The position numbers and the translations under genes are program-made. The notes beneath the pieces were generated by a model. The model was not told the DNA's origin. It did not search any database and saw only the letters and a program-made list of their open reading frames with translations. From Octopus sinensis (Eukaryota): a stretch of DNA of 64,000 bases. Location: NCBI RefSeq assembly GCF_006345805.1, contig NW_021832531.1, positions 434,001 to 498,000 on the forward strand. Reading direction: 5' to 3'. Shown piece after piece: positions 4,170 to 62,049 of the stretch. The first letter of the stretch is position 1. The number at the start of each line of letters is the position of its first letter.

Positions 4170-5330
4170 TAAGACCTTCGGCATTTCTGCCTTTTCAGTC
4201 CCGCACACACGCTCGCCTCTCAGCCGCAAACTAAGACTTACCGCCTTACCTGCCACCCAGACATTATCTTCTCTAAGACCTCAGGGAGGCCTTTGAGGGA
4301 CAATTCCTGGGTTTCCGAGAGCTCCTCTCGCCATCCTAAGCCATGGGCTAGCCGGATGGCTCGTCTTCTGACTTTCTTGAGCGCGTCAACGTACTTCTCC
4401 CGGTCCTCGCAGAAGTGCCAGGCATGTACGCCAGAGGTCAACACGGGTAACACCATGGCGTTAAACACACGTAGCCAAGCACCTCTCCGCAGCCGGAAAG
4501 CACGCAACGCGCCTAATCGCTGCATTGCACGCATTTTTGTACGTGCAATGTGATCATCAAACTTACAGGGCGGCTTAAAGATCACGCCCAAATAAGTCAT
4601 CCGATCGACTACAGCAATTGCTGACCCGTTCAGCAATAACCTAGGGACGTAATTAGTGTAACCCCTCGTCCTTTTACAGACTTTGAGAACACTGCACTCG
4701 TCCGCACGCATCTTTAGACCCCTACTCCCACACCAGTTTACAAGTCCATCCACAGCAACCTTTAGCCTACGACACGCACACTCAGGTTTCATCGAGTGAT
4801 CCCAGAGGATGATGTCGTCTGCATAAATTACTATTTCAGTACGAGCATTGACTGGCATGGGCGCAGATGCCATAAAGAAATTAAAAAGCGTGGGACTCAG
4901 CACAGAGCCCTGAGGGACCCCGCGAAGGACTGTTCTGACTTTGGAAAAGACCCCCTGATGCCGCACGACCTGTCCGCGAGATTCAAGGAACCCCGACAGC
5001 CAGCGCCTTAGACACGGAGAAACCCCACACGTGGCGAGGGAGCTCCGGAGGCCGTCGTGCCACACCGAGTCGAAGGCCTTTTCAATGTCAAGACTAACAA
5101 CATACCACATTCTTTGTTCTGGAGGGCGCACTTCATCTCAGAAGACACCTTCCATAAGCAGTCTCCACACGAACGACCCTCCCTGAAGCCCCATTAGAAC
5201 TCGGGGAGGGCATCAGCCACCGTCAGCTCCTCCAGGAGCCTTCGGTGCATGATCCCTTCTAAAATTTTAAATACAGCGGGAAGCAAGAAAATGGGCTGTA
5301 TCCCCCGGGAAATTCTTTGATGAACAGTTA
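4170..5330 (-). mobile_element. 5'-truncated APE-type LINE (Jockey/I/CR1 group), RT C-terminal half
   Basis: ORFs 4238-5131 and 5194-5400 carry LDIEKAFDSVWH, GVPQGSVLSPTLFN and YADD. GC-rich relative to flanks. No TSD found. Confidence 0.9.
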
Positions 5331-6225: not shown

Positions 6226-8207
6226 CTAGCTCGGCAGCTCGCTTCGCTCACCGCGACCTAGCTCCTGCGGAGGGCCTGTTTCATCAAACAACTATAAGTT
6301 TATGTAGATGTATAAAACTACCTGGTTTAATGTAACCCTATTCTATCGCCTGTTGATAAACGATGTTTGTCGTCCGTCCTTCCTTGGCATATATGAATAA
6401 ATTTTCTCTTCTGCCTACCCTCGAGCATCCCACATACAGCTGTCCATGTGAAAAGCACTCACTCTCTAAAAATAACCCAACTACCTTTAATGACTGTCCC
6501 TGGGCCTGTTTTATTGTCATTGCAAAACTCATCCTCAAAGGAAATTGCAGCCTTTTAAATCTACATGGTAATTCATCAGAAATTATCGGAATTCGTGGAA
6601 TATAAACATCCTCACCTCTATACTTACCTGTTAATATCGTCGCCTCTATTAAGTTAGCCATCAAATTTTTGATAACTAACCTCGTTCCGTTGCATAATTT
6701 AGGTGGCGCAAGATTTCGTAATAAAACCACTGGAACGCCTATCTTTAACTTTAAAAGATGATTCGGCATTCCAGAGGGATCTAAGGAGTTTAAAATTCAA
6801 TCCGGTTGAATTTTTAGAAAGTAACAAAAAAATAAAGAAAAACAATAAAAATGAATAATTTAAAAACAAAAAAATAAAAAAAAAACAAAAAAAAACTTTA
6901 AAAATTTGTAAAATGGTATAAACAAAAAAATCTCTGCCGCCACGGCAACAACCAGTCTAATTTTTTAACAGCCAATTAAGATAATGCTTAAGAACCTTTA
7001 TAGTCCGGAGATTAGCTTAGTGACCTTGATTAGAGAAACCACTGGCGGAAATGGAGCAGCCAGAGATGCGGCAGGCAGAGTAGCAGCAGCCAAAAAAGCG
7101 ACACACACAAAAAAGATTTAATTAATTACCTTAAGCTGACCGTTTTTTCTTCAGCTTCGTTTTTCCTCCTTCGGTTATCTATTTAAAAAATTATTTTTGA
7201 ATAATAAAAAGTTTAGGAAAGAGGCATACCAAAATAAATTCTATCTTTACGAAAAACTTAACTAAATAGTTAATATTTTTACGCAAATTCTTCTGATTGC
7301 GCTGTCAATTGGTGGTAAATTGTGTTAATGATTGTGCTAATGTGGTTTTAACTATCAAAGTGTTTTTCAAAATCTGTTAATTGCACACTCTATTCAAGGT
7401 CGTGCAATCTGTAATTGCACATTCTGTCAAAGTCAAATATGATAATAGCTTTAATTTTGATTCATGGTCGATAATGATATATGCATTTAATTTTAAAGAG
7501 AAAATCATAGGATGAATTGAATTTCTTTATCGCGAATAATTGGGAGTTCATCTTTGTTAATATTCTCGCTGTCGTTTCATCAAGGATATTCTTAATACGT
7601 GAGATTTTTGCCTCGAGGTTTTAATAGGCCTCATCATGAATGTCGAGGACATTAACGTTGTTCATTTTAATCAAATGCAGAAAATAATTTTTTGATTTTT
7701 TGGCGGGAAGGTTTTAAGGACCTCATCATGTAAGTCGAGGACATCGTAGTTGTTCATTTTAACCAAAATGCAGAAAATTTTTTTTTAATTTTTTTGGGGG
7801 GGAAGGTTTTAAGGACTTCATCATGTAAGTTGAGGACATTGTATTGTTCATTTTAACCAAAATGCAGAAAATTTTTTTTTAATTTTTTTGGGGGGGAAGG
7901 TTTAAAGGACTTCATCATGTAAGTCGAGGACATTGTAGTTGTTCATTTTAACCAAAATGCAGAAAATTTTTTTTTAATTTTTTTGGGGGGGAAGGTTTTA
8001 AGGACTTCATCATGTAAGTCGAGGACATTGTAGTTGTTCATTTTAACCAAATGTGCAGAAATTTTTTTTTAATTTTTTTGGGGGGGAAGGTTTTAAGGAC
8101 CTCATCATGTAAGTCGAGGACATCGTATTGCCAATTTGAAGTTGGTGTGCACACACAGACAGACAGACAGACAGACAGACACACACCATACCATTTTATT
8201 ATTAAGA
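6226..8207 (-). mobile_element. Non-autonomous Helitron with PIF1 helicase 3' fragment
   Basis: Minus-strand 5' end TCTTAATAATAAAATGG at 8207. 3' GC-rich hairpin (GCGAAGC core) followed by CTAG at 6226-6229. PIF1 ORF 6338-6769 ([28 protein letters not shown]). (CAGA)n microsatellite at about 8156-8181. Removing it rejoins pogo codons gat ta|c tgt. Confidence 0.9.
7612..8128. repeat. Tandem array of about 95-bp units (about 5.5 copies) inside the Helitron
   Basis: Unit ggaaggttttaaggacttcatcatgtaagtcgaggacattgtagttgttcattttaaccaaaatgcagaaaattt... recurs about every 95 bp with no spacers. Confidence 0.95.
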
Positions 8208-10135: not shown

Positions 10136-12220
10136 AGAATAGAATAGAATAGCGTTTATTGAGCGAAAAGAAAAACAAAGAAGAAATCATCGGCGGGGAG
10201 ATAAAAACAAAGCACCGAAGTGTCTCTTTCCATGCGTATCCCCAATACTAGTCATGTTTGACGACAATTCTCCAAGACCATCCGGATCGTGGGCACAGAG
10301 GATTCTTGTGAGTCTTTTAACCTTCCGTCAAGTTGTACTCCGTAAGCCAATTTCATAGCGAAACGTCTTGTCTTTTCAACTGTTCGATCAGGTAGTCACT
10401 CTCCTCCGTACCGTACCAGCCCTCGTAGCCATATGTGAGGACTGGCTGCACACACGTTTTGTATACGTAGATGTACGTTTCCGGATCCAGATGGAACCTG
10501 GTTAAGCTTTTGAGGATCCTCACACTCCTCTTTCTCTGATTTGCTATATGCTCTACGTACGAGCCACGACAGTTGATGGTTGCTCCCAGGTAAGAAAGAT
10601 TTTTGCTTTTCGGAGATCCATCACATAGCTACTCATCGCATATGCACACGACTCCGCATAGCGACTCCCTCTCCGCAACCATGAAATGGTGCTCTTCTCC
10701 GGTGCTAGGGTCAAACCCTTCTCTATAGTCCACATCTTTAGCGTTGCAATGTATGATTTCAGTCGTCTCCAAGACTGCGATATCCTTTTCGAGGTATCCA
10801 TGACCAGGATATCGTCAGCATAGATAACGAGCTTGCCAGTACGTGTCGACGGCAGAGGAATGCCGCAAACGATGTGATAAAGATGACTATGAATGTTACG
10901 GAGGACTTGTTCATTGGTTACAATTTCGTGAACATGAACTGGAGTTTATTCGAATCATATATGCGGGATTCTCTTCGAAATGTCGTGTCCCAGCCTCTGA
11001 GAAGCAGAGATGATATTGACAATCTCGATGATCACCTTAGATCGTCAATCATAAAATTCCTGGATGTTTATGCATTAAAAAATGTATGGAAACCCAAAGT
11101 AACGCAAAAGCGGATGAATTCGAAACTTGTCACTCTGATCAGAACGAAAGGTACCCTGGAAAATCGCAGGAGAAGATGTCGGGTTGAGTCAATCAAATGC
11201 CGCCTGAAATTGGAGATCGACAAGATAAAATCTACTATTGCAAAAATGGCCAAGACTGAGGTCGAAAGTAAATGGAGGTCTGAATGCAGAAAACTGGATA
11301 AGCGAAACCCTAATTTCTGGAAAGCATATCAACGCCTTACCAGAAATGATGCCAAAGGATTTGAAATTTCACTAAAAGAACCAGACGGAAAATATATTCC
11401 TCTGATCGTATCCCGGAAGTACTCAGGAACCAACTTAGTCAGGTTCAAGAGGTCGAATCTACCGTTCCACGAGGGACTTATGACCGAATTGTGAAGAAGC
11501 TTGGCTCTTCGCAATTATCGGAGGGACCATTATGTGGGGCGATAACACAGGAAGAGGTTGAAAGGGCAATTGCTGGGTTGAAGAACAAGGCGCCTGGCTT
11601 CGACTACATCCCTCCGAAGTTGTTAAAGAAGGCCCCTGAAATCTTGATACGAGCATTGACTATGTTGTTTCACGCCAGCTGGACGTTCGGGCACCTTCCA
11701 TCGGCGTGGAAGCATACGATTGTTCGAATGATTCCAAAATCTGGTAAATCGACACTGCTGGCACAGAACTACCGGCCAATTAGCCTCATTTGTGCTTTCT
11801 CTAAGAAAATGGAAAAGATTGTCTTTAACAGACTCTCTGGTCATATAGAGTCACAAAATTTGCTTTTACCCGAACAATGGGGATTTCGTGGAGGAAGATC
11901 CACAGGGGACTGTCTCAGGGAGTTAGAGCACCAATTATCCCGTGCTGACAGAAATGAAGCATGGCTAACTGTGGTTGTGTCTGGATCTGGCCAAAGCCTT
12001 CGATAGCGTGTGGCACCTGGGCCTACTCTCCAGAATCCATGACATCGGAGCCGGGATAAAGACCTATCGATGGCTGGAGAGCTTCTTGTCAGGAAGACAA
12101 TCATTTGTCCGCTGGGAAACCGCCTATCGGGGTGTGTGGAACTTAGAAGGGAGTCCCGCAGGGATCTATCTTGAGTCCACTTCTGTTCAACCTCTTCTTG
12201 GCGGACATTCCTCTGCCGTC
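10136..12220 (-). mobile_element. APE-type LINE with inverted 5' segment
   Basis: The 3' part is on the minus strand (YADD at 10809-10824, (CTATT)n tail at 10136-10151). The 5' part is on the plus strand (10874-12220, RT up to LADIPLPS). 12-bp TSD gatacagacact at 10124-10135 and 12221-12232. Confidence 0.92.
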
Positions 12221-12469
12221 GATACAGACACTTTAAAATTTTAAAGATGTGGGATTTCTAACAAAAATTCTAAAAACAATCCTAACCCTAATTGTTGAAG
12301 ACGTATTTGATACAGTTCCCTATGCGGCCTTCGGCCGCGGTGTGTTTGATACAGACTTTTAGAAAGCTTAAAGATGTGAGATTTCTAGCAAAAATTCTAA
12401 AAACAATCCTAACCAAAAGCCTAATTGTTTTCTAAATTCATCTTTATTTAAAGATAGTTAGTTAACTAG

Positions 12470-13990
12470 TGTTAATCTGTAATATCGTACTTTTCACACA
12501 ATTTAGTCATATAGGAATTAGTAAATTCCTTTCCATTATCAGTATGTAAAATCCGTGGTGGTCCGACATAGTAAAACACGTTCTGAAATAAATCCGATAT
12601 TTCTTTAGCCGATTTTGTCTTGGCTAATTCCACAATTGCATACTTTGAAAAAGAGTCGACGATGACCAGAATCTAAAAGAGCTTGTATTTAAAATTATAA
12701 ATACCCAAGAAAATGAATCATTGATGTCACTATATCTTCGTAAATCTATTAAATCAGCTATATAACGATCTCTTGGTCTTTTATCAATTATTGGCGTAAT
12801 AGGAGGTTTAGTGGCCATCAACTTTAATGACTAGGAATTTGAAACATAAAAAATACCTGACAATAAACACATTTTTTTATAGCATCAGCAATCTCTCGAC
12901 GAGATATGGAATAATAAGATGTTCGCAATTTACTAAACAATCTATCTCGTCCGAAATGATTGTAGTTACGCTCCGCCTAAATTTTTTTAACTTTTTTGAA
13001 TACCTCTAAGGTTTTTTCCCTTAGTTCCACTTCGTCCTCACAAAAAAACGTTACCAAAGACCCTTGTGTAAAATATACACTTTATCTTCATTGAATATCA
13101 TTTTTTTGGCCAAATTTTTGTATAGAAATCTTTTCTTACGGTCGATATTCCCATCCGGCTCATCAATTGACTGGCCGTCGGTAATCTCCAATTTTAGTCA
13201 TGGTATAAATCTCGACGTATAAGCAATAGATTATAATTATTTTTTCATTTTTTATTAATTTAAGTTAATTTTAATGGGATTGTTTAAATTTAAATGGATT
13301 TGTCTATTGTTGATGCGGCTGCAGTCAAGTCTGATGAGCAAATAATGCAGGAATATAACCGGTTTTCGTCTCTAAACAGGCTCTTCGGCGATAATATAGA
13401 AGAGTGTGTAATTTGGTGCGCAGAGAGGCGGTTGATCTCTAACACAATGAAATGCGTTCGCTGTAAAGTAAAACCTATATTCTCAAAAATAGAGACGCTG
13501 TCGTTTATCTAAGTCAAAAAGAAACGTGGACAACGCAATTTGGTTATGCATTCCATGCAATACTTCTCGAAGTATAAGAACGAACAGCTGGTTTTCCAGT
13601 AAGTGATCCTTAAACTAATTTTAGGAAGTCATTTACCGTTAGCGAAAATTTTGATGCTTACGTATATGTGGGCATTAAATTATTTTAGGAACATCGCGAG
13701 CGTTATTTGAATCTTATTTGGACGAATTCACGTGGCGGACCTCGGTAGTTGATAAAGAGAAGATATTCCAAGAATTTCTGCTCCTAATAGTTAGCAATAG
13801 ACAATCCCATTAAAATTAACTTAAATTAATAAAAAATGAAAAAATAATTAAAATCTATTGCTTATACGTCGAGATTTATACCATGACTAAAATTGGAGAT
13901 TACCCTGGCCGTCTTGAATTTCTTTGATTATTTTTAGATCCGAAGCTTTCAGTTTGCACGCTTAAAAAAAATAATTAAAAATATTAACTA
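12470..13990 (-). mobile_element. Ginger/GIN-like DDE integrase remnant, interrupted by a Merlin element
   Basis: NHFGRDRLF...CVYCQ zinc motif, RYIADLIDL and PPRILHTDNGKEFTN. 26-nt intron at 12831-12856. Termini not resolved. Confidence 0.75.
13180..13904 (+). mobile_element. Internally deleted Merlin (IS1595-like) transposon
   Basis: About 104-bp TIRs starting GGTAATCTCC with one mismatch. 9-bp TSD ctggccgtc at 13171-13179 and 13905-13913. N-terminal transposase piece (LISNTMKCVRC, SWFS|RSHLPLAKIL). Confidence 0.9.
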
Positions 13991-23960: not shown

Positions 23961-24589
23961 TCTTTCTTGCTTTCATAACAAAGATTTAATTTTTATACTG
24001 AAATAATTTTCAGAAACTGTAATAATACCAAATACCAAACGTGCACAATTTTTTTAGAAACCTAAAAAAATTAATTTTATCTGCGCATGTTGTTTTTCTA
24101 GCAAGCGACTTTACAAATTTAATGGATTTAGGTTCAACTCCCAGTCGAGGTAATTTACAATAATGTCATCAGGAAGATTTTATTTGCTCGCAAACAATTT
24201 ATGACCAATTCACTATCTTAAAATCCACGTCGTTAATTATGTGATGACGGGTACCAAGTATTTCAAGTTACTTTCGGAGTAGATAAGTGTCTACAGAGAA
24301 TTGGGTTATCAGGTACATTTGTAGTGCTGCCCAATTTGGTAAGTCTTATTTAAATTAGATAATTAATTAGTTCATTTATACCTTAACTCTAACAACATCA
24401 AAGTTCAAGTCAATTTTGTAGTGTAAAATAAAAACAACTATACAAAAAAATTAATAAAAGACACTTACTCCTGATTTACATGGTTTGTCTCATACAATTA
24501 GACGACTTAACTAATTAAACCCATACTTCTCTACAACTCGAAGATATAGGGTTGTAAAAGATACTATCCTCGCACAGTCAATCCAGAAT

Positions 24590-24810
24590 GGTACTAAAAG
24601 GAACCTGCCAATCTCAGGGGAAATCCCGGGGGCAAAATAGAGGCTGTTTGGTCACATCCTCAGGATGGACATGGATGCCCCCACAAACTCGATATAGATT
24701 ACAATTACACCAACACCTTTATTGGGCTGCACTTCACCTACTGCTCCTTTGTCTTACTGACTTGGCCAAGAAAGTGCAGCGCATCCTTCCGACTAAATGT
24801 TAGGAATCGA
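24590..24810 (+). mobile_element. RTE-like LINE 3' fragment
   Basis: RLFGHILRMD motif shared with the element at 25012-26455. Confidence 0.6.
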
Positions 24811-25011
24811 CTGAGAGCATTTCTAGATTACTTTCAAGTACAGTTGGACAAATCCATCCAAGCAATGTTTAATGTTAAATGTTAGATGGAGGGTGTTTGG
24901 TCTTTATTTCATGTTAAGAATAAATTTGAGACATATTTGAAATATTGTCCCATTATAAATTTATAAAATAAGCATGTTCAGTTTTTATTTTTGTTCACTA
25001 TTTCATATCTA

Positions 25012-26455
25012 TATATGTGATTAAGACTTTGTGCAATAGAGTTGCGTCACTAACTCAACCGAAATACCATACCGCCTATTGGGAAAGGAACGCTAATTCC
25101 TCTCCAAAAACCCAACAAGCCGCAAGGTCCTCTTAACAACATTCGCCCAATCATACTCTTGAACACAATAAGGAAAATCTTCTCACTCGTAACACTGGAA
25201 CGTATTAAGGACCCTGTTAATGAATATCTGTCGGCTAGCCAAAGTGGATTCAGGCCTGGGCGATCAACTGCAGATGTAGTATGGGGACATAGATGGATCT
25301 GTGCCATATCTCAGAAATTTAAAATGGCGACCACAATATTGGGCATTGATATGAGCAGGGCATTTGATACAATCCGCAGAGACAAGCTAATGGAGATCCT
25401 CAAAACCATTCTTGACAATGACTCGATCAGAATGGTTCGAGCACTACTTATAGACACCGAGTTAACGGTGAAGATCGGACCCGTAGAATCAAGATCTTTC
25501 AAAACAAGCATTGGAACGCCCCAAGGTGATTCAATATCACCTGTACTATTCATTGTCTATCTTGAAGCGGCACTAAGAGATCTGAGAAAACTAGTGAAGA
25601 CTACTTCAATAACTGAAGTGATATATGCCGACGATGTAGACTTTTTGTCTCATGATAAGTCGACACTCGAAGAACTGCTGAACATTGCTCCTCATGCACT
25701 GGAAAAATGGTTCTTAAAAGTGAACATAGAAAAAACCGAATATGTAACAATCAACCGGGAGGCAAATAGAACAGACGAAAAATGGCGAAACTCAAAAAAG
25801 TTGGAACTCTTTTAGGAGATAGTGAAGACATTATGAGGAGAAAGATGCTATCGACTGTTGCACTTAACAAACTGCGGACCACTTGGCTACGAAACCGCGA
25901 GGTTGGAACGGCCTTACGTGCCAAATTATACAATGCTTTTATTAAACCCATACTTTTGTACAACGGAGGAACATGGGGAATATCTGAGTCTGAATCAAAA
26001 TCTCTTGATGCATTCCATAGAAGACAGTTAAGAATTCTTATTGGCATCAACTGGCCAAAGAAAATCAAGAACTCCACCCTATACAATATCTGCAACAGCA
26101 GACCCGTCAGTGTGGACATTACCGAAGCACGTTGGCGCCTATTGGGCCACATTCTAAGACTCGACCGGGATGTTTATGCTAACTGGGCAATGGAATCATA
26201 TTACGCAAAGGACGAAAGATCTGCGTCCCGAGGACGCCCACGAAATACATTACCTATTGTAATCTCAAAAGAACTACAACGCGTTAAAAGACAACTGAAA
26301 AATGGAGACGACCTAGATACTCTCAGGAGTATAGCATACAACCGCACATCATGGAAAATTATGACCGAAAAGATAGTCTCATATGTGGCACATGTGGGAA
26401 CTTAATTAGTTTAAATTACATTATGTTCCTATGACAGTGCTAATAATAATAATAA
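25012..26455 (+). mobile_element. 5'-truncated RTE-superfamily LINE (the dominant family in the window)
   Basis: SGFRPGRST, DMSRAFDT, PQGDSISP, YADD and RWRLLGHILRL. (TAA)n tail. 13-bp TSD tatttcatatcta at 24999-25011 and 26456-26468. One frameshift near 25790. Confidence 0.93.
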
Positions 26456-26833: not shown

Positions 26834-27905
26834 TTAGTTAGGGTAATCGAGTCCAATTTTAATTTCTGCTTCAAGGAATGGCAATGCCAAGTCTATCATT
26901 GTTTGTTGTTGTTCGGTCAGGTCAGGCAGAGGAAGAACTTGTTCTATTCCCTCTCGACCAAAACGAACAGGCGATGCGAAATATGGCAAATTGGTAATGT
27001 CAGACCGCACATACGCACATTCCACGACGTCGGGCACTCCACTAAGCCCCGAGAGGACTGCTTTTGAAACCCGAAGAGCAGCCACAGCAATGGCGAGAGT
27101 AGCCGAGCCCTAAACAACAAGCATAACAAATGTACTTTTCCTTGCTTAGCGTTCAAAACAACCGTCCCAGCCTCCCTGATCTTCAGGCAGAGGTCCTCGA
27201 TTTGGGTAGGAGAAAGATTTCCGTCATTTATGAGTGCAACGATTGTGGTTTCCGAATGTCCACACACACTCATACTGGTCACTTCAGAGGGCTCAATACC
27301 CTAGAACAAAAATAAAGCAATCAACAATAAACCAAAGTCTCAGAAACAAACGTGACAGTTCTTTGAACATCCAGAGTCGTAACCCCAAATATCCGTTGTG
27401 ATGCATCTATTCCTAAACGATCCATCAATTTGACTGCCAAGGGGACCAGTGAATTGACCTACAGAGGTCACTGAGTGGAGTACTGGATTGGTAATAATTC
27501 CGACTATTGCAAAAGGGCAGTAAAGTGCAATCCCGGTGATCAGAGACTCCATTATTTTAGAATTAGCCACAAATAAATCAGCTCTTGTGGTTCCTGAAAA
27601 TTAATCAACAATAAACCTGGAACTCCCTTTTCCCCCGCACAAATAATAACTAAATCCATTCCTGAGAGAGCTCCTTCTAATTCGTCAGGTCCTTTGAATG
27701 CTTTTACTAAACAATTTGTTGGGATATGAGACAGATCTTCTGCAACTCCAGCAGGATCAATGATATCCAATAAGTTCAGTTGACTTATTACATCACTTTC
27801 AAGTTTAAAGAGAAGACTCAAAGGTTGGCCTATTCCTCCATTTGCACCAAGAATAGCAACTTTATACTACAAATTTATCAAGAAGTGATTATCTACTTTC
27901 GACAT
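26834..27905 (-). CDS. MDH2-type (mitochondrial/bacterial class) 2-hydroxyacid dehydrogenase, atypical
   Basis: Spliced MSKYKVAILGANGGIGQPLSLL, DLSHI, ITNPVNS, GVTTLDVQR, GHS and GSATL. Five tiny introns (23-32 nt). Active-site loop reads AGEKGVPGTTRADLF. Confidence 0.9.
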
Positions 27906-29194: not shown

Positions 29195-31100
29195 TCATTT
29201 AGAAGAAAACCAATTATTCAGATTGGACTCTGTTCTTCGCCGAATACACTTGGGTCCATCATTTCTTACATTATTAACAAACTTATCAACAGGACGATTA
29301 GAAAAACGGCAGGTCCCGTTCAAACAACGCTCAAAAGCCTGTAAACATAATTTCTTCAACATTACAGCACTGTCACTATAAAGAGACACATTCAGCCAGT
29401 CCTCAGCATCCTCTGATGTCAGCAAAGCCTGATTAATGTCAGTCAAAAATACAGGCATTCGATGGTGGATTTTGTCCATGTCTGGACCTGCCTCCATAGT
29501 GATGACTGAAAACACGAATTCGTCGACAGATTGACTTCCATTGAGGACAACTCCAGCCATCAGGAGTAGTGGCCATTCTAAACAAAATAATCTCCTCAGT
29601 AAAAAAACCTTCGATGGTATCGTTTTTAACCGCCTGGTCGTAAAATAAATAAGGCATTCTCCCCTCCGGCGTCGATTTCCATTCGTAAAAACTAACAAAT
29701 GCAAAAAAGTATTCTACCCGTCAGCAACTACCACGCATCGAATTAATCCGTTAAAACTTCCATTTTTTGAACTTATTTTTGACAATAATGTCTCCTTTCT
29801 GAAATTATTCCGTGTATTTGGATACTTTCTGTCCTCACTTGGACGATAGCCCCAACTGAAGTTTAGTTATGTTAGACAAACTGCATCTGAGTGAGTGCAC
29901 AGTCACCTTTCCGGTACTTTTGTCGAAGTGGTCGCAGTTTTTTTAGGCCTTTTAAAAAATCTAATAATTTTGAGGTGGAATATATTATATTTTATTTAAG
30001 TCGCTCTATCAATAATTTAAAATATTATTAAATTTTTACTAATTTATTTTCTAATTTTTTTAATATTATGGCGAGCATGTACCTAATATTGATATAAACT
30101 GGCACTATAGGTCACATGGAAAATTCTGTTGTGGACTTATGCAACATCAAATTCCGACAGCTCCAATAAGTAAGGAGGATGCAGTGCATTTTCTGCAAAA
30201 TGTGGATATCCTTTCAAAATCACGTATATGTCCGAAGGGACATCAGATGGAATTAGTCTTGGGACCGAAGCTCAATTGGAAATGCTCAAGAGTTGGTTGT
30301 AGAGTCCAATGTTCTATTAAAAAAGGTATAATTTCTCTCAAATAATTCTAGATACCTGGTTAGAGAATTGTAGATTGCCATTTGAGGATGTCATCGCCTA
30401 CATATACTTATGGAGTTACGATAGGCATACCTTCAAATGGCTTCATCACGAATACAATTGGGGTGAACATACATATGTCGATGGGCTATGTTTTTACGTG
30501 AAGTCTGTGTGGACGCACTTGTTAAAAGATCTGACGGCAAAATTGGTATTATTAATGTTTATTTCAGGTGGTCCTGGTATGATTGTGGAGGTAGACGAGA
30601 GTATGTTTTCCAAACGGAAAAACAACTCTGGAAGAGTTTTACCAAAACAGTGGGTCTTCGGTGGTATTTGTCGATTAGTTATTTTTTCAGAATTTATGTG
30701 GCGAAAACAAATACAGAACTATAAGGAATCTTTTGCACAGATTGTAAAAGACATAAATTCCTTCTACAGTCCTGGAATTTGGATGCCGCGTACTAAAAAT
30801 GACTAAATTGGTTAAATAAATTTTTAAATAATTTTAATAACCATTTAAATTATTGATAGAGGGTTATAAATTAAATAATCTATTTTTCACTAAAAAAATT
30901 AATTAATTTTAATTATCTTCTAAAAAAACTGCGACCACTTCGACAAAAGTACCGCCTGCCTTTCCTGAAAGATGAAATTTTTTGTGTTTTTAAATTCAGA
31001 TTTTTATTAATTGATTCAAGTTTTTTTATTATTTCTTCGGGTGAAGAAAAACTAAATTCATTAAAAATTTTATTTCGCACCACATAATACGGCCACACAT
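29195..31100 (-). CDS. HMCES: HMCES/SRAP abasic-site protector, interrupted by a Merlin element
   Basis: MCGR start at 31100 (Cys2), MHWG, RCVVVADGFYEW, LLMAG, IHHRMP and VNNVRN. No stops or frameshifts apart from the insertion. Confidence 0.88.
29912..30956 (+). mobile_element. Internally deleted Merlin transposon
   Basis: Perfect 33-bp inverted repeat at 29912-29944 and 30922-30954. Imperfect 9-bp TSD (cacctttcc / tgcctttcc). Transposase pieces CPKGH and VEVDESMFSKRKNNSGR...WVFGG. Introns at 30326-30351 and 30546-30567. Confidence 0.9.
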
Positions 31101-31141
31101 TATTTTATTAAATTTTAATTTATTATGAAATTTTTATTAAC
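31101..31141. promoter_or_regulatory. 41-bp AT-rich divergent intergenic region between the HMCES and DPH5 start codons
   Basis: ATGs at 31100 (minus) and 31142 (plus). Promoter function is inferred. Confidence 0.5.
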
Positions 31142-31984
31142 ATGCTTTATTTTGTGGCGATCGGTTTTGAAACTTGGAAAAGTATATCTCTCGAAGCATT
31201 CGAGATTTTACAGCAAATAAAAATAGTTTTTTGTGAAAACACAATTAAAATAAATTTAAAAGAACTAGTTTATACATATAATTTAACATTTTAGCAAAAA
31301 GAATCTAACTGGCAATACGTGAGAATCCGAGATTCTATTGGTTATACATCAAAATTATTTTTAGAAGAAATATCAAAAAAAGCTCTTCATTACGATGTCG
31401 CAGTAATAGTAACAGGCGACTGGCTTTTATTGTATGATTCGTATTTTTGAAATTAAAAAGTGACAGAACGTATTCTTTACTTTGTCGTGCTTATCTCGAT
31501 TATGTGAGGGACGGAACCATTCGAGTGCTTCACAATTCCTCGATTTTTTCTTCTGTCTGTTGTTCTGGATTGCCTGTACTTGTTTTTTGGCTTATTTTTG
31601 ATTTATTCTTTTGGAGAGTCCATCATTGTGCCCACAAAACCTCACCCTTCTGTCATGGAACGTCTACACTCTTCTATCCTGGCCAATTATAATCTAGGTC
31701 TCCACACTTTGTGCATTCTCGATATTGACTTTAGTCATAAATATGACGATATGACTCATAGTATTAAAGAATTGGCAATTTTCTCCGAGAATTCAGTCAT
31801 TTTTGAAGCAACGTGTTTATTGATGTCTGATATTGGCTGTGAAACTGGTGTGATATTCCGTTCTCCGTTAGGACAGATTATTAATGTGGAATTTAAACAG
31901 AATATTCAGTGTTTTGTGGTTTGCGGGCCGTTGACGGAGGTTGATTTGAGTTTTATTTCCGTCTCAAGTCAGCCATTACAATAA
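31142..31984 (+). CDS. DPH5: Divergent diphthine methyl ester synthase
   Basis: MLYFVAIG, VAVIVTGD, VLHNSSI, GLP|IYSFGES and GLHTLCILDI align with DPH5. One intron lacks a canonical AG. Confidence 0.75.
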
Positions 31985-33154: not shown

Positions 33155-34328
33155 TTAGTTTTCAACCCAATCGAGGATGTCCTGTGCGAAGTAGGTTATG
33201 ATTAGATCAGCCCCTTTGGCTGAGATATGTACAATGAAACCTGCTCGTCTGTAAGCTGTAAGGAACTCGAATAGGACGTCTCGTTCTTGGAGATTGCTAC
33301 TCTCAGCAAATTTTTTGATCATTGTGTATTCCCCAGATGTCTGATAAGCGGCTAAACAGTACTGAGGGTACTTGGAAATGTTTAAATAGTGATTTACTTT
33401 TGATTTTATACGATAAATATTGTCGAGATTCACCATGGCTGGTTTGATTATTAGCATGTCGGTCCCCTCTTCAATGTCCCTTGCCTATTGGACTAAGACT
33501 ATGAAATACTGCTGCTCTCAGAGCCAGTCCGGCAGACCCGGCAGGATGCTGGTAAGTTGATCTGTCAAAGTAGAGAGGAGTACTGCCAGCGGCGTCCCTA
33601 AAAATATTACAAATTATGTGCCTGAATTGGCTATATAGATTGGAGTGGTGCTTCACTGAATAGCTCATAACAGCCACGGAAGAACGCAGATCCGCCGAAA
33701 TTAAATTTTCAGAAATAACAGCGACTCGTCCATCCCTCATATCCGACGGAGCCACGACATGACAGCCCGCTTGTGCATATGCCAGTGCAATTTCTCCCAG
33801 TCGGCGAATACTCTGAGAGTTATTAATGCTTGAATTGTTCTGTTGGTCAATGATTCCTGACCATAATTTAATAAAGCAATACCACAATGGCCATGTGATG
33901 TGTAACTGCAGACACATACGTCGCAAATCACTGCAAGTTGTGGAAAATGTTTTGTGAGTATTTGAGTCGCACGTACAACAGGGGATTCGGGACTGTCAGC
34001 ATTGCTCGCCAAATTGTCTTTTTTAAGTCTTTTCAAGGCCCCAAACAACAAAACTGATTTTAATCCTTTTTGCACAAGTGGTTCAATGCGGTTTGCAATA
34101 TTTTCGATTGAATAATATGTCAGAGGCGGCATGGATTTGATTGGCCCGTCATCGTGAGGCACGTCGCTGTGAACGTTACATAAAGGAATGCCTTATAAAA
34201 ATGGGATATATTATATTTTCGGGACTTATTCTGGTATTGACTGTCTGCCAATCACGGACGACACGGTTGAAATAGGAAGGAATTATGTATTTTGAGGGAC
34301 TTGAATAACACCGAAAAATATTTATCAT
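33155..34328 (-). CDS. ALAD: Delta-aminolevulinic acid dehydratase (porphobilinogen synthase), zinc-dependent type
   Basis: IIYPIFI, DVCVCSYTSHGHCG, VVAPSDMRDGRV, MSYSVK, IIKPA and AAYQTSGEY. First intron is GC-AG (34167-34191). Confidence 0.93.
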
Positions 34329-40429: not shown

Positions 40430-43230
40430 ATTGAGATTCCGTTTATGCCGTATTTTACTTCAGGTCAATTTTTCTTCCTCAATTCTCTTAACTAGCTGCC
40501 TCCAAGATCCACGGTTCTTTACAACTACTCTGAGCATATCCAAATTATCTTCCATTTCCCCTTTTGTTTCACATTGGTCAGGTCCTTTTGTAGGAGGTTT
40601 AACGGAACGAGTTGTTCACTCCTAGGCAGAAATAGTTTTCCATTGCTATGCTGGCAGATGTCATCTGGTTCATCCGAAATATGTGATCAATAGATGCCAT
40701 TTTGATTCAATGATTTCCAGGCTCAACGCTCTTGCATTACATATTTTGTATAGATTTTTGGTTGTTATTTTCTATGCCCAGTTGATTCCATTCAACAGTC
40801 GGAGTTGTTTACGATGAAAGAAATCTCGTTTGTTAATTATGGCTTTAATATTTTCTTGTCTCTATATATAGTCGATATAATCTCCATAAATCACTTTAGT
40901 TTAAAGTAGATTGTCAATTAGTAGTCTGAAGTCTTTGAGTGCCGCCTCCAGATATGTCACAAAAAGTACCAGTCACAAAGAATCTCCCTGCAGTACCCCG
41001 AACGTTGTATCAAATGGGACAGACTCTTCATTAGCAAGACTCAGCTGCGTAATTTAGAGCAGTGGTTCTCAACGGTGGGCGATTCGCCCCCTAGGGGCGA
41101 TTTTTTTTGGTAGGGGGGCGATTTTTTCTGCCAGGGGGGCGATGGCTGATTGTTAATATTTGAAAAATTAAAATCTTATGTTAGAAGTCGATAATCTTTG
41201 AAAAAATAAAGATATATAATCAAGTCTAATAATATTTATTAATAATATGATATTTTTATTATATTTTATTTAAATTTTTAAGCGTGATTTTTAGTTATCA
41301 TTATGGGTCGTGTTCAAAAAAAAGTCAGAATGTATAAAGATGAATATATTTCTCTTGGAAGAAGAGTTATTATTTGCAAAATCTTTAGTCACGGATACTA
41401 CAGGATTGTCAATATTCAAAATGTTTGAATCTTATTTATTCTTAAATGATATTCCATTTGAACATATTTTATCGTGCGCAACTGATGGCGCAATGGCTAT
41501 GGTTGGAAAATATCGTGGTTTTTTAGCTTTTCTAAAACAAAAATCTCCAATGTCCACTTCAATTCATTGTATTTTACTTTGGCATCATTTAATTGCAAAA
41601 AATTATCTGAAGAATTGAATGCATCAATGCAAACAAACTAAATATAGAAGAAAGAGGCGACATTAGAATTACACTTACGAAAAGAAGTACAAATTTTGAA
41701 AAACTTGTCAATCTTCATCAACCACAAGGATCTCATTAAAACTCTTATTTTCTAAATAAAAATTTTTACTAATGAAATAAGGGGGCGATATAAAAATTGG
41801 AGGGGCGAAAAAAATTCCAAGGGGGCGATACAAAAATAAAGGTTGAGAACCACTGATTTAGAGTAATAAACGGAGCATTCTGACAAAGTCCTCGTTACTT
41901 AAATTCTCCAAGATATTGAGAAGTCTCCCTCTGGGTATAGAGTCAAATGCCTTAGACATATCAATGTCAAAAATGCCAGTACCACCCTTGTTCTTTTGAT
42001 GTATTGCACAAAGCTATCAACGTCCCCATACCACATCAGCTGTAGATGCCCCTGGCCTGCATCCGCTTTGACCGTGAGAGAGGAAGTTCACAATGTCAGG
42101 TCAAATCCTATTCAATACTATATGTGATAGTGTCTTGCAGGGAGTTGTAAATAATCTTAAACTTGTTAAGGTTTTTTAGTGTGCCATTGCCCACGTCTAG
42201 TGTTGAGTTGTGCTTGAATGTTTTGTTGTATATCTCGGTTAATAACTCGGAGATCTCGTATTTGAGAAGTTTTGCATTTATGTTGTCAGGGCCGGCAGCT
42301 CTATGGTTGTTTAATTCGTCAAGACCTTTCTTTGTTTCCAGAATCGTTATCGAAATATTTAATTCTCGTACTTCACCATAGAATTGTTTGTCTTTGTTTT
42401 GTTGAAGGCCAGCTGATAATGGCGGCCGATAAGATTTCGTGTTTGTTTAGCATAGTCTTACAAAAATGATCGTGTATTGTGATTTTTAATGGCTGCGTGC
42501 CTCCATGTAGTAGATGAACAGCTTTGAACATTTGAGTGCCATTTTTGAACCTTTCTACTTCTTTAGCCATTCTTACAAGTTTATTTTCCTTTATTTCCCT
42601 GGTTCTTTTCTTTATTTTATACAGGGTTTGATTCCGCGTGACTCTTAGATTGTGTTCCTTTGCCTGGTACTGAGAAGTTGCAACCTTCAAATGTGGATAG
42701 TTTTTTTAAGCTTGTGGTTATAGTAACGTTGAAATGTTTTAGTTTTACTCTGTGAATGTGCTGCACAGTATTGCATCGATAGTGTCTTGTCAATCATTTC
42801 TCTCAATGTATTTCGATAGCTTTCCGAGTCGTCCGTCAATGGAGAGTTGCTCCAATGCGAATCTCTTTTCCGATACCTTCCTGCTAGTAGCTTTAGAAAC
42901 GCCAAAATATCTTTTGAAAAGAAAACGTGCCACAACCAATCTGTGATCACTGTCCACTAATGTCCCACTGTAGCTTCGAGAATCTGTTATTGGTGCCTTG
43001 TATTTTTGTTTGAAGATAATGTAGTCTATTTAGTTGAATATAGACTTGATATTTCCAGATTTGCCTTTCTACAGCAGCTCCATGTCTTGCTAAGTGTTTA
43101 AAAGTAGTATTGCATAGAAATAGTTTGAAGTGATTTTCCTGATCAATTCCCGATCCCTCTTCCATGACTTCCCATGAATTCTTCGTGGCAACTCTCATGT
43201 TCTGCCTCTGTGTTCCAGTCTCCGGGAATG
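40430..43230 (-). mobile_element. Decayed RTE-like LINE interrupted by a hAT element
   Basis: Linker, RT and 3' motifs of the 25012 family. The frame EDFVRMLRLL...FDTTFGVLQGDSL spans the hAT insertion. Confidence 0.8.
41060..41855 (+). mobile_element. Non-autonomous hAT (Buster/Charlie type)
   Basis: 14-bp perfect TIR CAGTGGTTCTCAAC, 8-bp TSD atttagag, transposase piece CATDGAMAMVGKYRG...IHCI. Confidence 0.93.
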
Positions 43231-43499
43231 TATATCATGAACGATGTTTCAAAGATTAATATACTTGTTCTTTTTATTCTATTTTAAGTGTATGACACAT
43301 ATTCTATCACTCACTCTCCACGTCTTGTGGATTCGATTGTTCAGTTTTTGTATATTGAAAATCCCATGCTGTAGTTTGGACAATTCGAAGGGTTTAGAAT
43401 CAGATTTATAATCCTACACGTGTGAAAAGCAAGGTAATCATCTGAACAATCATATTTTAGCCCCTCTGTGATGGGCAAAAACCCATAGAGAATCCAGAT

Positions 43500-45300
43500 C
43501 ATCTTTGTTTTGTAAGTTCTTACCAACAGAGTTGAGATCCTTCCCAGAACTCCCGGGAAGATAAATTTCGGCCGTCCACGATATTCTTACCATACACTAT
43601 GAAGTATTCGTACATTGCGAGATTAACGGAGGTGGCTGGGCTCAGTGGTCTGCCACAATTTCTGCAGACAGCGGTCTAGCGTTATAGTGTTTGTAGAACG
43701 ACTGATTATTGATTTTAGGTGGCCAGTGAAGTCAGTGAAAGGAATCTATAGTCTTCCGTTCAGTATTCGAGATTCCTCTCCCAATGTCAAAGAATTATAA
43801 AATAGAACAGGTTTCACATAGACGTGGTAAAGCATTGATATGAGTTAGCGATTAGCAGGCCGGGTTTGGAGCCAAGTTTTCCATATTTTGCTCTAACTAT
43901 CTGCGGGTAGTGTTTCCACCGTCTCCTAGCAAAAAGGCGAGTTCATATCCCTTCAAGTTTCACAAACTTTGGCGTCCATGCGTTTTATCTCAGTGAATTC
44001 GATTTTAGAAATGTTGATTATGAGAAACAACTTATTAAGTGTCCTTAAAGAATAGTTTAGAAGATCGATTAGGAAAGTGATCGATTAGATTGTTGTCAGA
44101 AACAAAGTGAACATCGTCAGCATAGACAATTTCGCTGATAGAACCATCGTAGAAAGATCTCAAATATTTCAAACGTGTTTCCAAATAGACGATAAACGTC
44201 AGAGGCAAGAGAAAATTTCTAAAGGCATGCCGACATTCGTTTCAAACCGCCTTGAGAGAGACGATCCAACATTGACAGATAATTCTGTCTTAGTAGGCAG
44301 TAACCGTATCATTCTGACTTCATCCTCAGTCAGGAAACTCTGTAGGACCCCGATAAATAAATCACAGCGTACACAGTCAAAGGCTTTCGACATGTCAATA
44401 TCGAGGATGGTCGTGATTCTTTTAAATTTCTGCTGAATAGCGCATCGCCATCTGTGACTCCAGAAAAAATTCGCAGTAAATCCGCTCTGACTCAAATTCA
44501 TTAACACTCTCGTTTGTGCGACTCAATACAACTGGCAACTCAAAAGTATGAAGAGGCAGAGATTTTTAAACGGGCTGAAGATTTTGTTGGCTTTTTATAT
44601 AGAGATGAGTATGCCTGACCCTAGCAGAGATGGGTCGTGGGTAGTAAACATGCCTCAATTTTGTCCATAATCGACTTTAAACCGTACTTCATCAGCTCTA
44701 ATTTGGTCCAGCAGGCCGACAGTTCTTGAGTTTGCTAGCAGCTCGGGCAACCTCCTCCACTGTGATGGCCCTGTCGAAATGTACGGCTGTGCTAGTAAAA
44801 GGAGGAATATCGTCGGTGGTTAACTTGAATTGATTTTCAAAATAATCAGCTATTAGTTCGGCTAGAATAGTGGGGTCGTGAATAATTGTTCCTGTGTTAT
44901 CAATGATTTTAAGTTTACTGTAGTTTCCTCTTTTAGATAGTCGTATGACCTGAAACATTTGTGCGCCGACCCCGAGTTCTTCAATTTACATTACAAAAGA
45001 CTTCAGGGTGTACAGACCGTGCTTCTTGATGTGTCTTTTTATTCTGGCAAGTTCATTCTCAAGTTGAGATTTGTTGCTATGATCGTTTTTATTTTCAATT
45101 CTGAGTTTGATATTTTTTTGCTTAATGATAAGTGCATACACATCTGGATAACTATCCCAAATGGGTTTTATTTGTCCGCTTTTCAATATGTTTGCCAACA
45201 GCTATATCATTTAGCTGCCTATATGTATTCCTTTCAGAATAAACTCTCATATGTCATTTGGGAAAAAGCCAGTTATCTATAGAGTGCTGGTAAGTTGCCC
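43500..45300 (-). mobile_element. Decayed RTE-like LINE
   Basis: SKLKNCRPAGP, LDIDMSKAFD, SFLTEDEVRMIRLL and FETNVGMP. Confidence 0.8.
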
Positions 45301-52786: not shown

Positions 52787-55700
52787 TCTGTGTATAGAAT
52801 CAAACGCCCGAGACATATTAATGCCTAGTATTGCGATAGATTTTTCGTATTTTTGGCATAGAGCGCAGTACCATCTGTGCCTCCAAACTATATTAGCAGT
52901 AGACCTGCCTGTACAAAAACCACTTTGGCCAGGGGATAGGAATTTGTTAGCTTTTTATCCGGTGTAATGGGATGAGGGATAATGTTTTACGTATGGAAGT
53001 TAGTAGAATTATTGGTCTAAAGTTGCAAACGGGGTCTTTAGCTTTCCCGGGTTAATGTAATGGGATTAGCCATCCTTTTCCGAGAGCCAACGGATTATCT
53101 TCCTGAAGAATAAGATTAAAAACATCGGTGATTATTTTAGCTAGCTCCACTGGTGCGTGTTTTAAAAGTTCTGTCGGGATATTGTCTGGTCCTGCGGATC
53201 TTCCGGTGTTCAACTTTTTAATATCTTGCAGAATTTCCGAGAGACTTATCGGGTTTGTTAAGTGGAATTGTCAGGTTTTAAAATTCAGTGTTGATCAGTT
53301 TTAGTATACATATTGAATAGGGAATCAAAGTGCGAAGCTAGAATACAGTCCGACCCCAAAATGGGGCAGACCCCAGGGGTGGGGCACCCTCGGATTTTGG
53401 GGCACCCCCGCAATTTGGGGCACTTTATTCCAAAAGTACATTTTGGCAGAAAAAAAATAAAAATCGATAAAAAATTATGGAATTTTTGGGGCACCATAAA
53501 ATCATTTATAAGGAATTAAAAATAAAATAAAATTATAATAAATTAATTATTTTTTGTTTTATTTTCAATTTATATTTTTATTGTTGTGGTTATGGATTAC
53601 GAAACTAAATTGAAGATTGCTAAAGAAATTTTGAAGAAAAATTTATCTGAGAGGCAACTAATGAAAAAGTACAACACAAGTAAAGGAACAATATCAAGAA
53701 TAAAACGAAATATTGTACCTTTCTTGCAACACGGCAATACTATTTCTGAGGAATATGACACATTTAAAGCCGATAAAGATAAATTTGATGATCAAGTCTT
53801 TGAAATATTTCAAAGACTACGCGTAGATAAAATTCCGATTTCAGGCCCTATTTTGAAAAAAATTGCCTTAGTTACAGCTTCAAAAATTGGATTTACTTCT
53901 TTTAAAGCTTCCAATGGGTGGCTTGATAGATTTAAATTGCGGCATGAACTTCAATTCAAGTCAATATGTGGTGAAAAAGCTTCATGTGATTTATCTTATG
54001 TGAAAAATTATTTTGAAAAATATGACCAGAAAGTATTAAATATGGACCTGAGAATATATTTAATTGTGATGAAACTGCGCTTTTTATAAAAAGAACTCCT
54101 CAAAAATCATTTGTTGAACAAGGCGAACCGTGTTTTGGTTATAAACAAGGGAAAGAAAGACTCACTGTTCTTCTATGCTGCAGTTTAATCGGGGAAAAAC
54201 TTAATCCATTGATTATTGGAAAATATAAAAACCTCGGTGTCTAAAAAATTTTGATGTTCAAGATTTTGGGTTATTGTATTCATCTTCTCAAAATGCATGG
54301 ATGACTGGAAAGACTTTTATGAGTTGGCTTACACTTATAAATGAATCGTTTTGCAAAAACAACAGAAAAATATTATTAATACTTGACAATGCGGGATGCC
54401 ATAAAACTGCCGAATGTTCGAACATCGAATTTTTATTTTTGCCGAAAAATACAACGCCCTATTTACAACCTTTGGATATGGGAATAATCAAGATTTTTAA
54501 AGATTATTATTCCTCTTTCTTAATGGAATTTTTATGTTTTCAAGATTTCGAAAACGATTTTACACATTCTATTGGTAAATTAAATTTGCGTCAGGTTATG
54601 ATGCTAATTTCAAAAGGATGGGAGAAAATAGATGCTAAAAGTATTGTTAATTGTTGGAAGAAAATCGACAGGAACCGTGATTCTTATGCAACAAAAAACT
54701 GTCTAACAGATGAACATTTAGATCAAGTTTAACGAAACAATTGATGGAAGAATGCGAAGACATGAACAATAATGTTTATGATACATATTCAGAAACCGAA
54801 AATAGTGAAAAGTCGTAGCAAAAACAAAAGATCTGCTTAACAATTTAGAAGAAAAAATTTCTAATGTTGCACCAAGTATGCTCCGAGATTTTTTTGATTT
54901 TCGGCTGAAATTGACGAACAATATCAGACAAAACTCTACAAATAAAAAGAAAATAACTGAATATTTTAGTAAAAATGTTTTTGATGTTTATTAATGGTTT
55001 AATTTTTAAAAAAATAACAAACCCCTGTTTTTGGGGCACCCCCGCATTTTGGGGCACTTGGTGCCCCATTTGGGGGTCGGACTGTACTAGCTTTTTCGAC
55101 GTCCTCGGTAACTGTACGATCGAGATTATGAATGATAGGGGCCCTGTTGAGGATGCGAATTGCTTTAAACATCATTGGCCGTGTTTGTATTTCATTATTC
55201 GGAAACTTGTTTTTCTGCTTCACTTTTGGCAAGAAATTTTTGTAATTGTTTCATCTTTGTTAATACTCTACCTCTCTGCGTACAGAGTTCTTTGATTTTC
55301 TCTGTGTTTTCCGATTGTAGTCTGAGTTCTTTTTGTATTAGAGAAAGTCGTCCGATTTCTGGACTACTTTGTTTGTGTCTCGATCCGTGTGTGGAACCCA
55401 AGACGTCAGACGAGGTATTCCGTATTGCGGTAACTGTTTCCTCCCAAATCTTGTTAGCTGGTTGATTTTAGTAGATACAGTCGATGCTGTTTTTCAGGGT
55501 CGTACAATATCGAAGATTGGTGGACTCTTCGTATCCAAGCCTCTCCGTATCGTATCGTGCTGGTGAGGTGCCTTTGAGCTTTTCACGTATTCCATGGATT
55601 CTGTACAGCATTAACTGAGCCACAAGTTTATGATCGCAGCTGGTTAAACCCAGTCCAGGTGATTTTCATTTATAATAAAGAGCACTGAGTTGAGACTTTT

Positions 55701-57289: not shown

Positions 57290-57620
57290 AAGAATTTATT
57301 GGTGTTAATTCCATTTAGTTTCCTATTAATCCCATATTGTTTGGTATTAATCCCACTTAGTTTGATGTTAATCCCACTTAGTTTGATGTTAATCCAACTA
57401 AGTTTTCTCCTAATCCCAGTTAGTTTGACGTTAATCCCAGTTAATTTGACGTTAATCCAATTTAGTTTGACGTTAATCCCAGTTAATTTGACGTTAATCC
57501 AATTTAGTTTGACGTTAATCCCAGTTAATTTGACGTTAATCCCAGTTAGTTTGACGTTAATTCCATTTAGTTTTCTGATAATCCCACTTAGTTTTCTGCT
57601 AATCTCACTTAGTTTTCTGA
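57290..57620. repeat. 21-bp minisatellite (ttaatcccagttagtttgacg-like, about 15 copies): expanded terminal array of the IS630/Tc1 family
   Basis: Clear 21-bp period. The lead-in at 57261-57360 is homologous to 58849-58945. Confidence 0.9.
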
Positions 57621-57659
57621 AAATACATACTATAGAAAATGCATACGATCTATACCATT

Positions 57660-58985
57660 TTCCATACTAAATGGGATTAATGCCAAACTAAGTGGAATCA
57701 ATAACAAGCTAAGTGGGATTAACAGTAAACTAAGTGGGTTTAATAACGAACTAAATGGAATCAATAAAGGATTACGTTTATTATAAATATAATTTTTCGA
57801 TCCAGCGCAAAAAAATGCCACGTAAATCATTGGAAGAGAAAGAACAATTGCATAGAAATAAAATAGATTTAATTTCAGCTGCAGAATCTGGTGGAGATTG
57901 GAAAAAAACAGCAATTGAACTCAATATCTCAAGAACAACAGCATATCGTTGGATAAAGGATGGAGTTAAACCTGACGCGAGAGGTGGAAATTATCGAAAA
58001 AAGTTTAACAAAGAACATGTCGATTTTTATTATCATCATGCATCGAAGACGATAACACAATTACCCTTCATGGAATAAAACAAAAATTTGAATTACATTT
58101 TCCGCAATTATCAATATCAAAAACGAGTATCGCTCGACATCTCGATCTAAGTTTATATACATTAAAGAAATTGAGATTCGACCCTGAAGAAGCTAATTGT
58201 GAAATTAACAAAATCAAAAGGAAGGAATTTGCTGAAAAATATTTAAAATTTCATCGGAAATAGACCAATTTGTTTTATGGATGAATCAAATTTTAATCTT
58301 CATATCAGCAGGACAGAAGAAAGATCGCTAAAAGAACAAGATGTACTACTCTAGCTGCTGCGTCAGAAGGGTCAAATATACATCTAATTGGATGCATCTC
58401 AAATCTAGGACTCATTTACTATGAAATACAAAGGGGAGCTTTTAAAAAAGAGCAAGCTTGTCACTGGATGAAAAATTGTTTGAGGCAAGCACGGATTAAC
58501 ATGAGGGTCCATTATTATGGTGTTGGACAATGCACTAGCTCACAGTGTATCGAAGTTCTTCAATTGGAAGAATTTAATGATTTTCATATTCTTTGTCTCG
58601 GTCCGTACAGTCCGATGCTTAACCCCGTCGAACATGTATGGTCCAAAATAAAAGCTCACGTAAAAAGAGACATCTCTTCTCTAAAAAACCAAATTCTATT
58701 TCAACAAGAAAAGATTTGTCAATTATAGATTATCGAACAGGGATACTTGAAAAAATAACTGTGGATAGAATAAAAACAATTACATCTGATGATTGTGAGC
58801 TTTATTTCTGAAATACAGAAAAATATTGGTGACATGTTAAATATGGTTAACACCAAATTTTAAACAAAGAATTTTTCGAGTTAATTCCATTTAGTTCGCT
58901 TTAATCCTATTTTTTGATATTAATCTTACTTAGTTTTCTATTGATTCCACTTAGTTTGTTATTGATCACACTTATTATTAACACG
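57660..58985 (+). mobile_element. IS630/Tc1-like (DDE_3) transposon, frameshifted
   Basis: ATG at 57815, HTH ISRTTAYRW, FMDESNFNL and PYSPMLNPVEHVWSKIK. Inverted terminal arrays of the 21-bp motif at 57665-57770 and 58880-58980. Confidence 0.85.
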
Positions 58986-61990: not shown

Positions 61991-62049
61991 TTTTCGTTAT
62001 TTCGAGACGAATTTAACAAAAAACTTGTCGCGATGTCTGATTATGATCG

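Follow-up and report, generated by a model that had tools for sequence, protein, structure and literature searches.

The stretch of the Octopus sinensis assembly that was analysed, 64,000 nt in length and referred to below as the window, carries its host genes (cathepsin L, an AAA ATPase, MDH, HMCES, DPH5, ALAD, RPL11 and RPL10A) in clusters that are small and very compact, with transposon-rich DNA lying between them. Reading of the ORF translations by eye suggested reverse-transcriptase fragments (e.g. at 4241-5137, 10356-12257, 24558-26402 and 42111-45000), pogo or Tc1-like sequences (53547-54729 and 57755-58725), a Helitron-type helicase (6341-6796) and a hAT-like sequence (60697-63334). 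Tandem arrays were located at 7616-8127 (95-bp unit × 5.4, 92% matches), 57304-57767 (21-bp unit × 15) and 62414-62674 (127-bp unit × 2.1), and an Rfam scan returned no RNA gene in the window. The insertion in HMCES was the only transposon noticed inside a host exon of the window. A ciliate germline origin of the DNA was considered and rejected on account of the long ORFs free of TAA/TAG and the ordinary TGA/TAA stops.

HMCES on the minus strand and DPH5 on the plus strand stand head to head with 41 nt between their start codons (31100-31142), which implies a tiny shared promoter region. In DPH5, the reading frame and the alignment (CCSGLP/IYSFGES) need the removal of a 25-nt GT...TG interval at 31576-31600 with no AG nearby; the acceptor is then non-canonical, unless the assembly has a single-base error within a T run. 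The features of the interrupted gene, of the inserted element and of its junctions are compiled in Table 1, together with two introns of ALAD.

Table 1. Positions in the window of HMCES, the Merlin element inserted into it, the junctions and two ALAD introns.
Feature	Positions	Strand	Remarks
HMCES exon 1	31081..31100	-	ATG at 31100, MCGRIM...; alternative donor 3 nt upstream equally possible
HMCES exon 2, part upstream of insertion	30960..31051	-	...SPEEIIKKLESINKNLNLKTQKISSFRKG
Frame-restoring interval	29907..30959	-	1,053 nt (= 3 × 351); candidate GC-AG intron
Upstream (gene-strand) target copy	30958..30965	-	GGAAAGGC; candidate GC donor 30959-30958
Filler, 4 nt	30954..30957	-	AGGC (gene strand); repeats in tandem the 4 nt that end the upstream target copy
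Right TIR, 35 nt, perfect	30920..30954		canonical terminus ends 30953
Merlin-superfamily DNA transposon, non-autonomous	29913..30953	+	perfect TIRs, PF12762 homology
Transposase remnant	30139..30806	+	alignment and tblastn blocks 30151-30327, 30354-30674, 30684-30767
Left TIR, 35 nt, perfect	29912..29946		canonical GG terminus begins 29913
Downstream target copy	29905..29912	-	GGAAAGGT; candidate AG acceptor 29908-29907
HMCES exon 2, part downstream of insertion	29882..29906	-	DCALTQMH
HMCES exon 3	29718..29855	-	WGYRPS...RCVVVADG
HMCES exon 4	29609..29691	-	FYEWKSTPEGRMPYLFY...
HMCES exon 5	29195..29577	-	EWPLLLMAG...IHHRMPVFL...VNNVRNDGPKCI..., TGA stop
ALAD GC-AG intron, 25 nt	34167-34191	-	AAG/GCATTC
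ALAD GC-AG intron, 24 nt	33598-33621	-	CAG/GCACAT

The HMCES gene and its interruption

The minus-strand HMCES gene opens with ATG TGT GGC CGT (MCGR) and runs to a TGA at 29195. As the first-pass annotation had proposed, it is interrupted within a coding exon, identified here as exon 2, and removal of the element together with one copy of its target restores the frame. Upon joining of 30960 to 29906 and splicing of four GT-AG introns of 29, 26, 26 and 31 nt, an open CDS of 741 nt was obtained. The resulting 246-aa product matched PF02586 with an E-value of 1.1e-28 and 100.6 bits (cut-off 27.1), covering profile positions 1-214 of 214, and it also matched human HMCES and E. coli YedK, whose structures are solved (PDB 5ko9, 6oe7, 6kbs and others). 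With these proteins it shares the full-length SRAP profile, the N-terminal Met-Cys and the conserved Asn, Glu and His-His-Arg-Met-Pro. It differs from them in being very divergent, with no more than 37-39% identity reached in a comparison with 5.8 billion database proteins, and in its N-terminal region.

In an alignment of 60 sequences, N26, N63, R65, E95 (of FYEW), H157 and R159 were found in invariant columns, and Cys2 (of MCGR) and H158 in nearly invariant ones (at least 90%). The earlier statement that Cys2, the FYEW glutamate and HHRMP are intact, with no other lesion in the gene, was confirmed. The rebuilt N-terminus had in addition been described as short and devoid of the YNxAP motif. 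Its shortness was borne out, if only just, since the Asn-to-Trp spacing amounts to 21 residues versus 23-59 in the homologues, which makes the N-terminal hairpin the shortest of the 60. The motif, however, survives in the degenerate form LNLKT, where Asn26 aligns with the invariant Asn of the 59 homologues. SRAP/HMCES proteins are characterised by crosslinking, through a thiazolidine, to abasic sites of single-stranded DNA. Judged from its sequence, the restored gene is an SRAP/HMCES gene, and its product is predicted to be an abasic-site protection protein.

The insertion point lies between the codons for Gly38 and Asp39, in a variable hairpin loop preceding the conserved (R/K)WG strand. The residues following it, DCALTQMHWG, align with D-x-x-L-x-x-M-x-W-G of the best homologue. 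The possibility that the element had entered a tiny intron already present at the site was dismissed, as candidate GT-AG intervals of 20 and 26 nt at the target give stops or the wrong frame; the alignment of DCALTQMHWG with homologues likewise rules it out. With the insert retained, the gene reads FRKG-RRYFCRSGRSFFRR-stop, with the stop 15 codons in, and the product contains nothing of HMCES past residue 38, so that the catalytic Glu and His are missing. A second HMCES copy, for which a search had been recommended, was not present in the window.

The Merlin element and its junctions

Merlin transposons are defined by TIRs of 24-462 bp with 5'-GG ends and by a flanking TSD of 8 or 9 bp (Feschotte 2004 as summarised in PMC8101967). 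The element in HMCES measures 1,041 bp between its 5'-GG termini, and its transposase sense is antisense to the host gene. The tips of its TIRs read GGTACTTTTG at 29913 and 30953; with mismatches allowed, the TIRs extend to ~140 nt at 78% identity. A 26-nt probe derived from the TIR arm detected the two arms only and no other site in the 64-kb window (0 expected by chance), and no second copy of the element was found there. The TIR sequence was also absent from the metagenome contigs searched.

A search of 5.8 billion proteins yielded 65 relatives of the transposase remnant, with a best E-value of 2e-38 and identities of 40-45% over ~75% of the query. Nearly all of them are ~290 aa in length and contain PF12762 (DDE_Tnp_IS1595; Merlin/ISXO2-type). 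The remnant keeps the zinc-finger N-terminal part, the block of the first catalytic Asp (VEVDES...WVFGGICR) and the C-terminal EFMWR block, and it is traversed by a 26-nt GT-AG intron (30326-30351) resembling those of the host genes. Near 30675-30683, a deletion of ~98 aa has taken away the second Asp and also the Glu of the DDE triad. No family was returned when the ORFs of the element and the remnant were scanned directly against Pfam, because the core of the domain is deleted. Since two residues of the triad are deleted, the element is non-autonomous and unable to move by itself; an autonomous Merlin copy was not found in the window.

The homology of the remnant to PF12762, the 35-nt TIRs within the 24-462 bp range, the 5'-GG ends and the presence of a short duplication are features in common with Merlin and with IS1016 of the IS1595 family, and the assignment to Merlin made in the first-pass annotation therefore stands. 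Different from these systems are the loss of the second Asp and the Glu, the limitation of the duplication to 7 identical nt and the 3-5 extra bases at one junction. In terms of its sequence, the element is a new, internally deleted and defective member of the Merlin superfamily.

A second Merlin of a different family was located at 13180-13904. It is 725 bp long, has 107-nt TIRs that are 98% complementary, ends in 5'-GGTAAT termini and is flanked by a perfect 9-bp TSD, CTGGCCGTC; being fully canonical in form, it served as the local yardstick for Merlin ends. Only zinc-finger and C-terminal remnants of its transposase are present (tblastn match 13685-13795). This second copy looks recently inserted.

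On the gene strand, the upstream flank of the element in HMCES reads GGAAAGGC-AGGC, followed by the GGTAC... of the terminus, and at the other end ...GTACC is directly followed by GGAAAGGT. The duplicated target had previously been given as GGAAAG/GC upstream and GGAAAG/GT downstream. Both readings are correct; the duplication comprises 7 identical nt, or 7 of 8 if the 8-bp GGAAAGGY is considered (7 of 9 for 9 bp), and the mismatch between the copies falls on the synonymous third base of a Gly codon. One target copy abuts the Merlin end, whereas the other is displaced by 3-5 nt through the AGGC tandem duplication, which lies between the copy and the TIR. The junction is thus not a clean Merlin TSD. 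Of site pairs drawn at random, 0.1-0.7% would be expected to have a 7-nt word common to both flanks; the duplication is therefore regarded as real. Before insertion, the target would have read ...TTTCAGGAAAGG(C/T)GACTGTG....

If a misassembled repeat had placed the element in the gene, the real locus would be uninterrupted. The window is indeed repeat-rich, and the non-canonical interval needed in neighbouring DPH5 may be a base error. However, a 7-nt flanking duplication beside canonical GG termini, with its low chance expectation, is a signature of transposition and not of a collapsed repeat, and we consider such an artefact very improbable.

Restoration of the gene might also occur in the DNA of some cells, through excision of the element by a transposase acting in trans or through programmed elimination. 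Cutting out exactly the 1,041-nt GG...CC element (3 × 347) would leave a 12-nt footprint composed of both target copies and the filler. This footprint is in frame and gives FRKG-RRKG-DCAL, i.e. four extra residues (RRKG) in a loop whose length varies among homologues. The perfect 35-nt TIRs would be in keeping with such an excision, and the near-perfect ends of the second Merlin nearby fit recent Merlin activity. An in-frame footprint, however, would be met by accident in one case out of three, the window offers no autonomous copy as a source of transposase, and DNA elimination in dicyemids was not found in a limited search of the literature. Removal of the element from the DNA is accordingly rated as highly improbable.

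Local introns and the candidate GC-AG splice

Nineteen introns in HMCES, ALAD, MDH, DPH5 and the Merlin transposase were curated by hand against conserved protein sequences. An automatic scan for short frame-restoring introns was too noisy, as GT donors could not be told by their scores from the GA and GG controls. The curated introns are 23-32 nt long, with a median of 26 nt and a mean A+T content of 72%, and in 17 of the 19 the acceptor was whichever AG came first at a distance of 18 nt or more from the donor. Compactness is likewise seen in RPL11 and RPL10A of the window, whose exon segments are not separated by long gaps.

The GC donor that had been suspected in ALAD proved to be a stronger case than claimed, given that two of the six introns of this minus-strand gene are GC-AG and both are needed to match the conserved ALAD sequence. 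The share of GC-AG introns in the curated set (2/19) is well above the animal norm. Such introns usually account for ~1% in animals.

Local acceptors are generally without a pyrimidine tract, as exemplified by CCAAAG/G and TAAAAAG/T. Among animals, introns of less than 30 bp are found only in myxobolid myxozoans and in the dicyemid Dicyema japonicum, and the splice signals in these organisms are GTa and AG alone, without a pyrimidine tract (PMC13644364). The lack of a tract at the candidate acceptor in HMCES, which the first-pass annotation had listed as a caveat, is thus normal for this genome, and the caveat was dropped. For the genome of D. japonicum, 36.7% G+C, 48.9% repeats, a mean intron length of 38 bp and 1.24% heterozygosity have been published, with pooled animals as the source (PMC6736024). 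These published figures fit the window, which has a G+C content of ~35%, and it is from such figures that an attribution to D. japonicum may be drawn. The mean of 38 bp is greater than the local median of 26 nt, implying that some longer introns exist there. Among 5.8 billion database proteins, none is more than 48% identical to MDH (26837-27905), and the divergence of MDH and HMCES, as judged from their sequences, fits a fast-evolving parasite lineage. A 315-aa ORF of the window had no exact counterpart on record.

A GC-AG splice from 30959 to 29907 had been proposed to regenerate the original HMCES mRNA exactly, and on paper it does so: borders of the introner type are present, with GC at 30959-30958 and AG at 29908-29907, and the joined product is in frame. 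If the spliceosome removed this interval, i.e. the insert and one target copy, the locus would hold a nascent intron and a functional gene. In line with this, the AG/GCA context of the donor is that used by two ALAD introns, several local acceptors lack a pyrimidine tract as the candidate does, HMCES is otherwise intact, and splice sites supplied by a TSD are an established route to new introns (PMC12130899).

The properties of the interval argue against it. At 1,053 nt versus 23-32 nt in the 19 local introns, it is ~40 times the local median, in agreement with the earlier remark that a 1-kb intron is atypical here. The first-AG rule (17/19) predicts the use of AGs at +22, +31, +40 and +43 from the GC donor, which are close to or just beyond the range of local intron lengths, yet pairing of the donor with any of these four brings in a stop after only a few codons, and the acceptor that would be required comes after 49 other AGs. 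The 5' end is G+C-rich, the first 30 nt having 43% A+T versus 72% in real introns. The candidate interval therefore departs from an ordinary local intron in length, in acceptor choice and in A+T content, and these three properties together make exact splicing unlikely. Furthermore, the single base distinguishing one target copy from the other is the very one that makes the donor GC instead of GT. The GC...AG border pair itself can be regarded as a by-product, because the duplicated target contains AGGY; 8-mers with this motif make up 2-4% of those in the window.

Introners are multi-copy transposon families that give rise to spliceosomal introns and derive a splice site from the TSD (PMC12130899, PMC9860276). 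The situation in HMCES is alike in that a TIR element resides in a coding exon, GY...AG is found at the edges of the element plus one TSD copy, and exact splicing would restore the mRNA. It is different in that introners are multi-copy, are spliced in many genes and have a length that the host can manage, whereas here one copy was found in 64 kb at ~40 times the host norm. The presence of a single copy in the window gives no sign of an introner-like family. Huff et al., in 2016, reportedly described introners as intron-generating transposons of this kind, in which the TSD provides a splice site.

Exon insertions of maize Ds and dSpm are said to be partly spliced from pre-mRNA, as reported by Wessler and colleagues in the late 1980s. 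These resemble the present case in that a defective DNA transposon sits in an exon, and removal at the RNA level could likewise give a leaky allele. In maize, however, the splice sites lie inside or at the ends of the element, the genome is one with long introns, and the exact mRNA is rarely restored. We conclude that a nascent intron at this locus is very unlikely. That an animal with introns of ~26 nt removes a 1-kb Merlin exactly by a GC-AG splice, with both sites contributed by the duplicated target, is a proposition to which we attach very little credence.

Status of the interrupted HMCES copy

An ordinary disruptive insertion that renders this HMCES copy null, as either a null allele or an early pseudogene, is the explanation we favour, with a probability of roughly 0.7. 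It draws on the intact Merlin ends without a catalytic core, the stop 15 codons into the insert and the local intron lengths of 23-32 nt. The first-pass annotation had left the choice between intron birth in progress and a knockout; the knockout fits the evidence, while intron birth does not, owing to the length of the interval, the proximal AGs and the G+C-rich start.

According to this explanation, an internally deleted, non-autonomous Merlin has inserted in antisense orientation into exon 2 of HMCES, between the codons for Gly38 and Asp39. Retention of the insert in the transcript would expose the stop, the product would end soon after residue 38, and the copy would presumably be null. The intactness of the remaining gene may then mean that the insertion is young, or that it represents one allele in a heterozygous or pooled sample, and would not call for removal at the RNA level. 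The genome type that the window resembles shows high heterozygosity and comes from an assembly of pooled animals (PMC6736024). The null copy could be just such an allele, or gene loss may be beginning here in a reduced genome.

Several points speak against the null reading. HMCES carries no second lesion; GC-AG introns with the same AG/GCA context are used nearby, in two of the six introns of ALAD; splice signals in such genomes are minimal (GTa and AG; PMC13644364), so that sequence alone is a weak basis for excluding the candidate sites; and the mean intron length of 38 bp published for D. japonicum points to some introns longer than the local ones. As to the first of these, an otherwise intact HMCES fits a young, a polymorphic or a spliced insertion alike and does not discriminate between the models.

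If the insertion is a plain one, it carries little weight, since it merely adds to the alleles disrupted by transposons in a genome that is reduced, rich in repeats and prone to gene loss. The locus nevertheless gives a warning for annotation, as automated pipelines will miss or truncate an HMCES gene with a Merlin insert, and the window shows that a genome of this kind can have Merlin elements that look active and, locally, a high proportion of GC-AG introns. If exact removal at the RNA level were true, a DNA transposon would have been caught becoming an intron in an animal, as a snapshot of intron birth. It would then follow that a spliceosome accustomed to ultra-short introns can still handle a kilobase intron, and the locus would provide a test of splice-site pairing in the animal genomes with the shortest introns.
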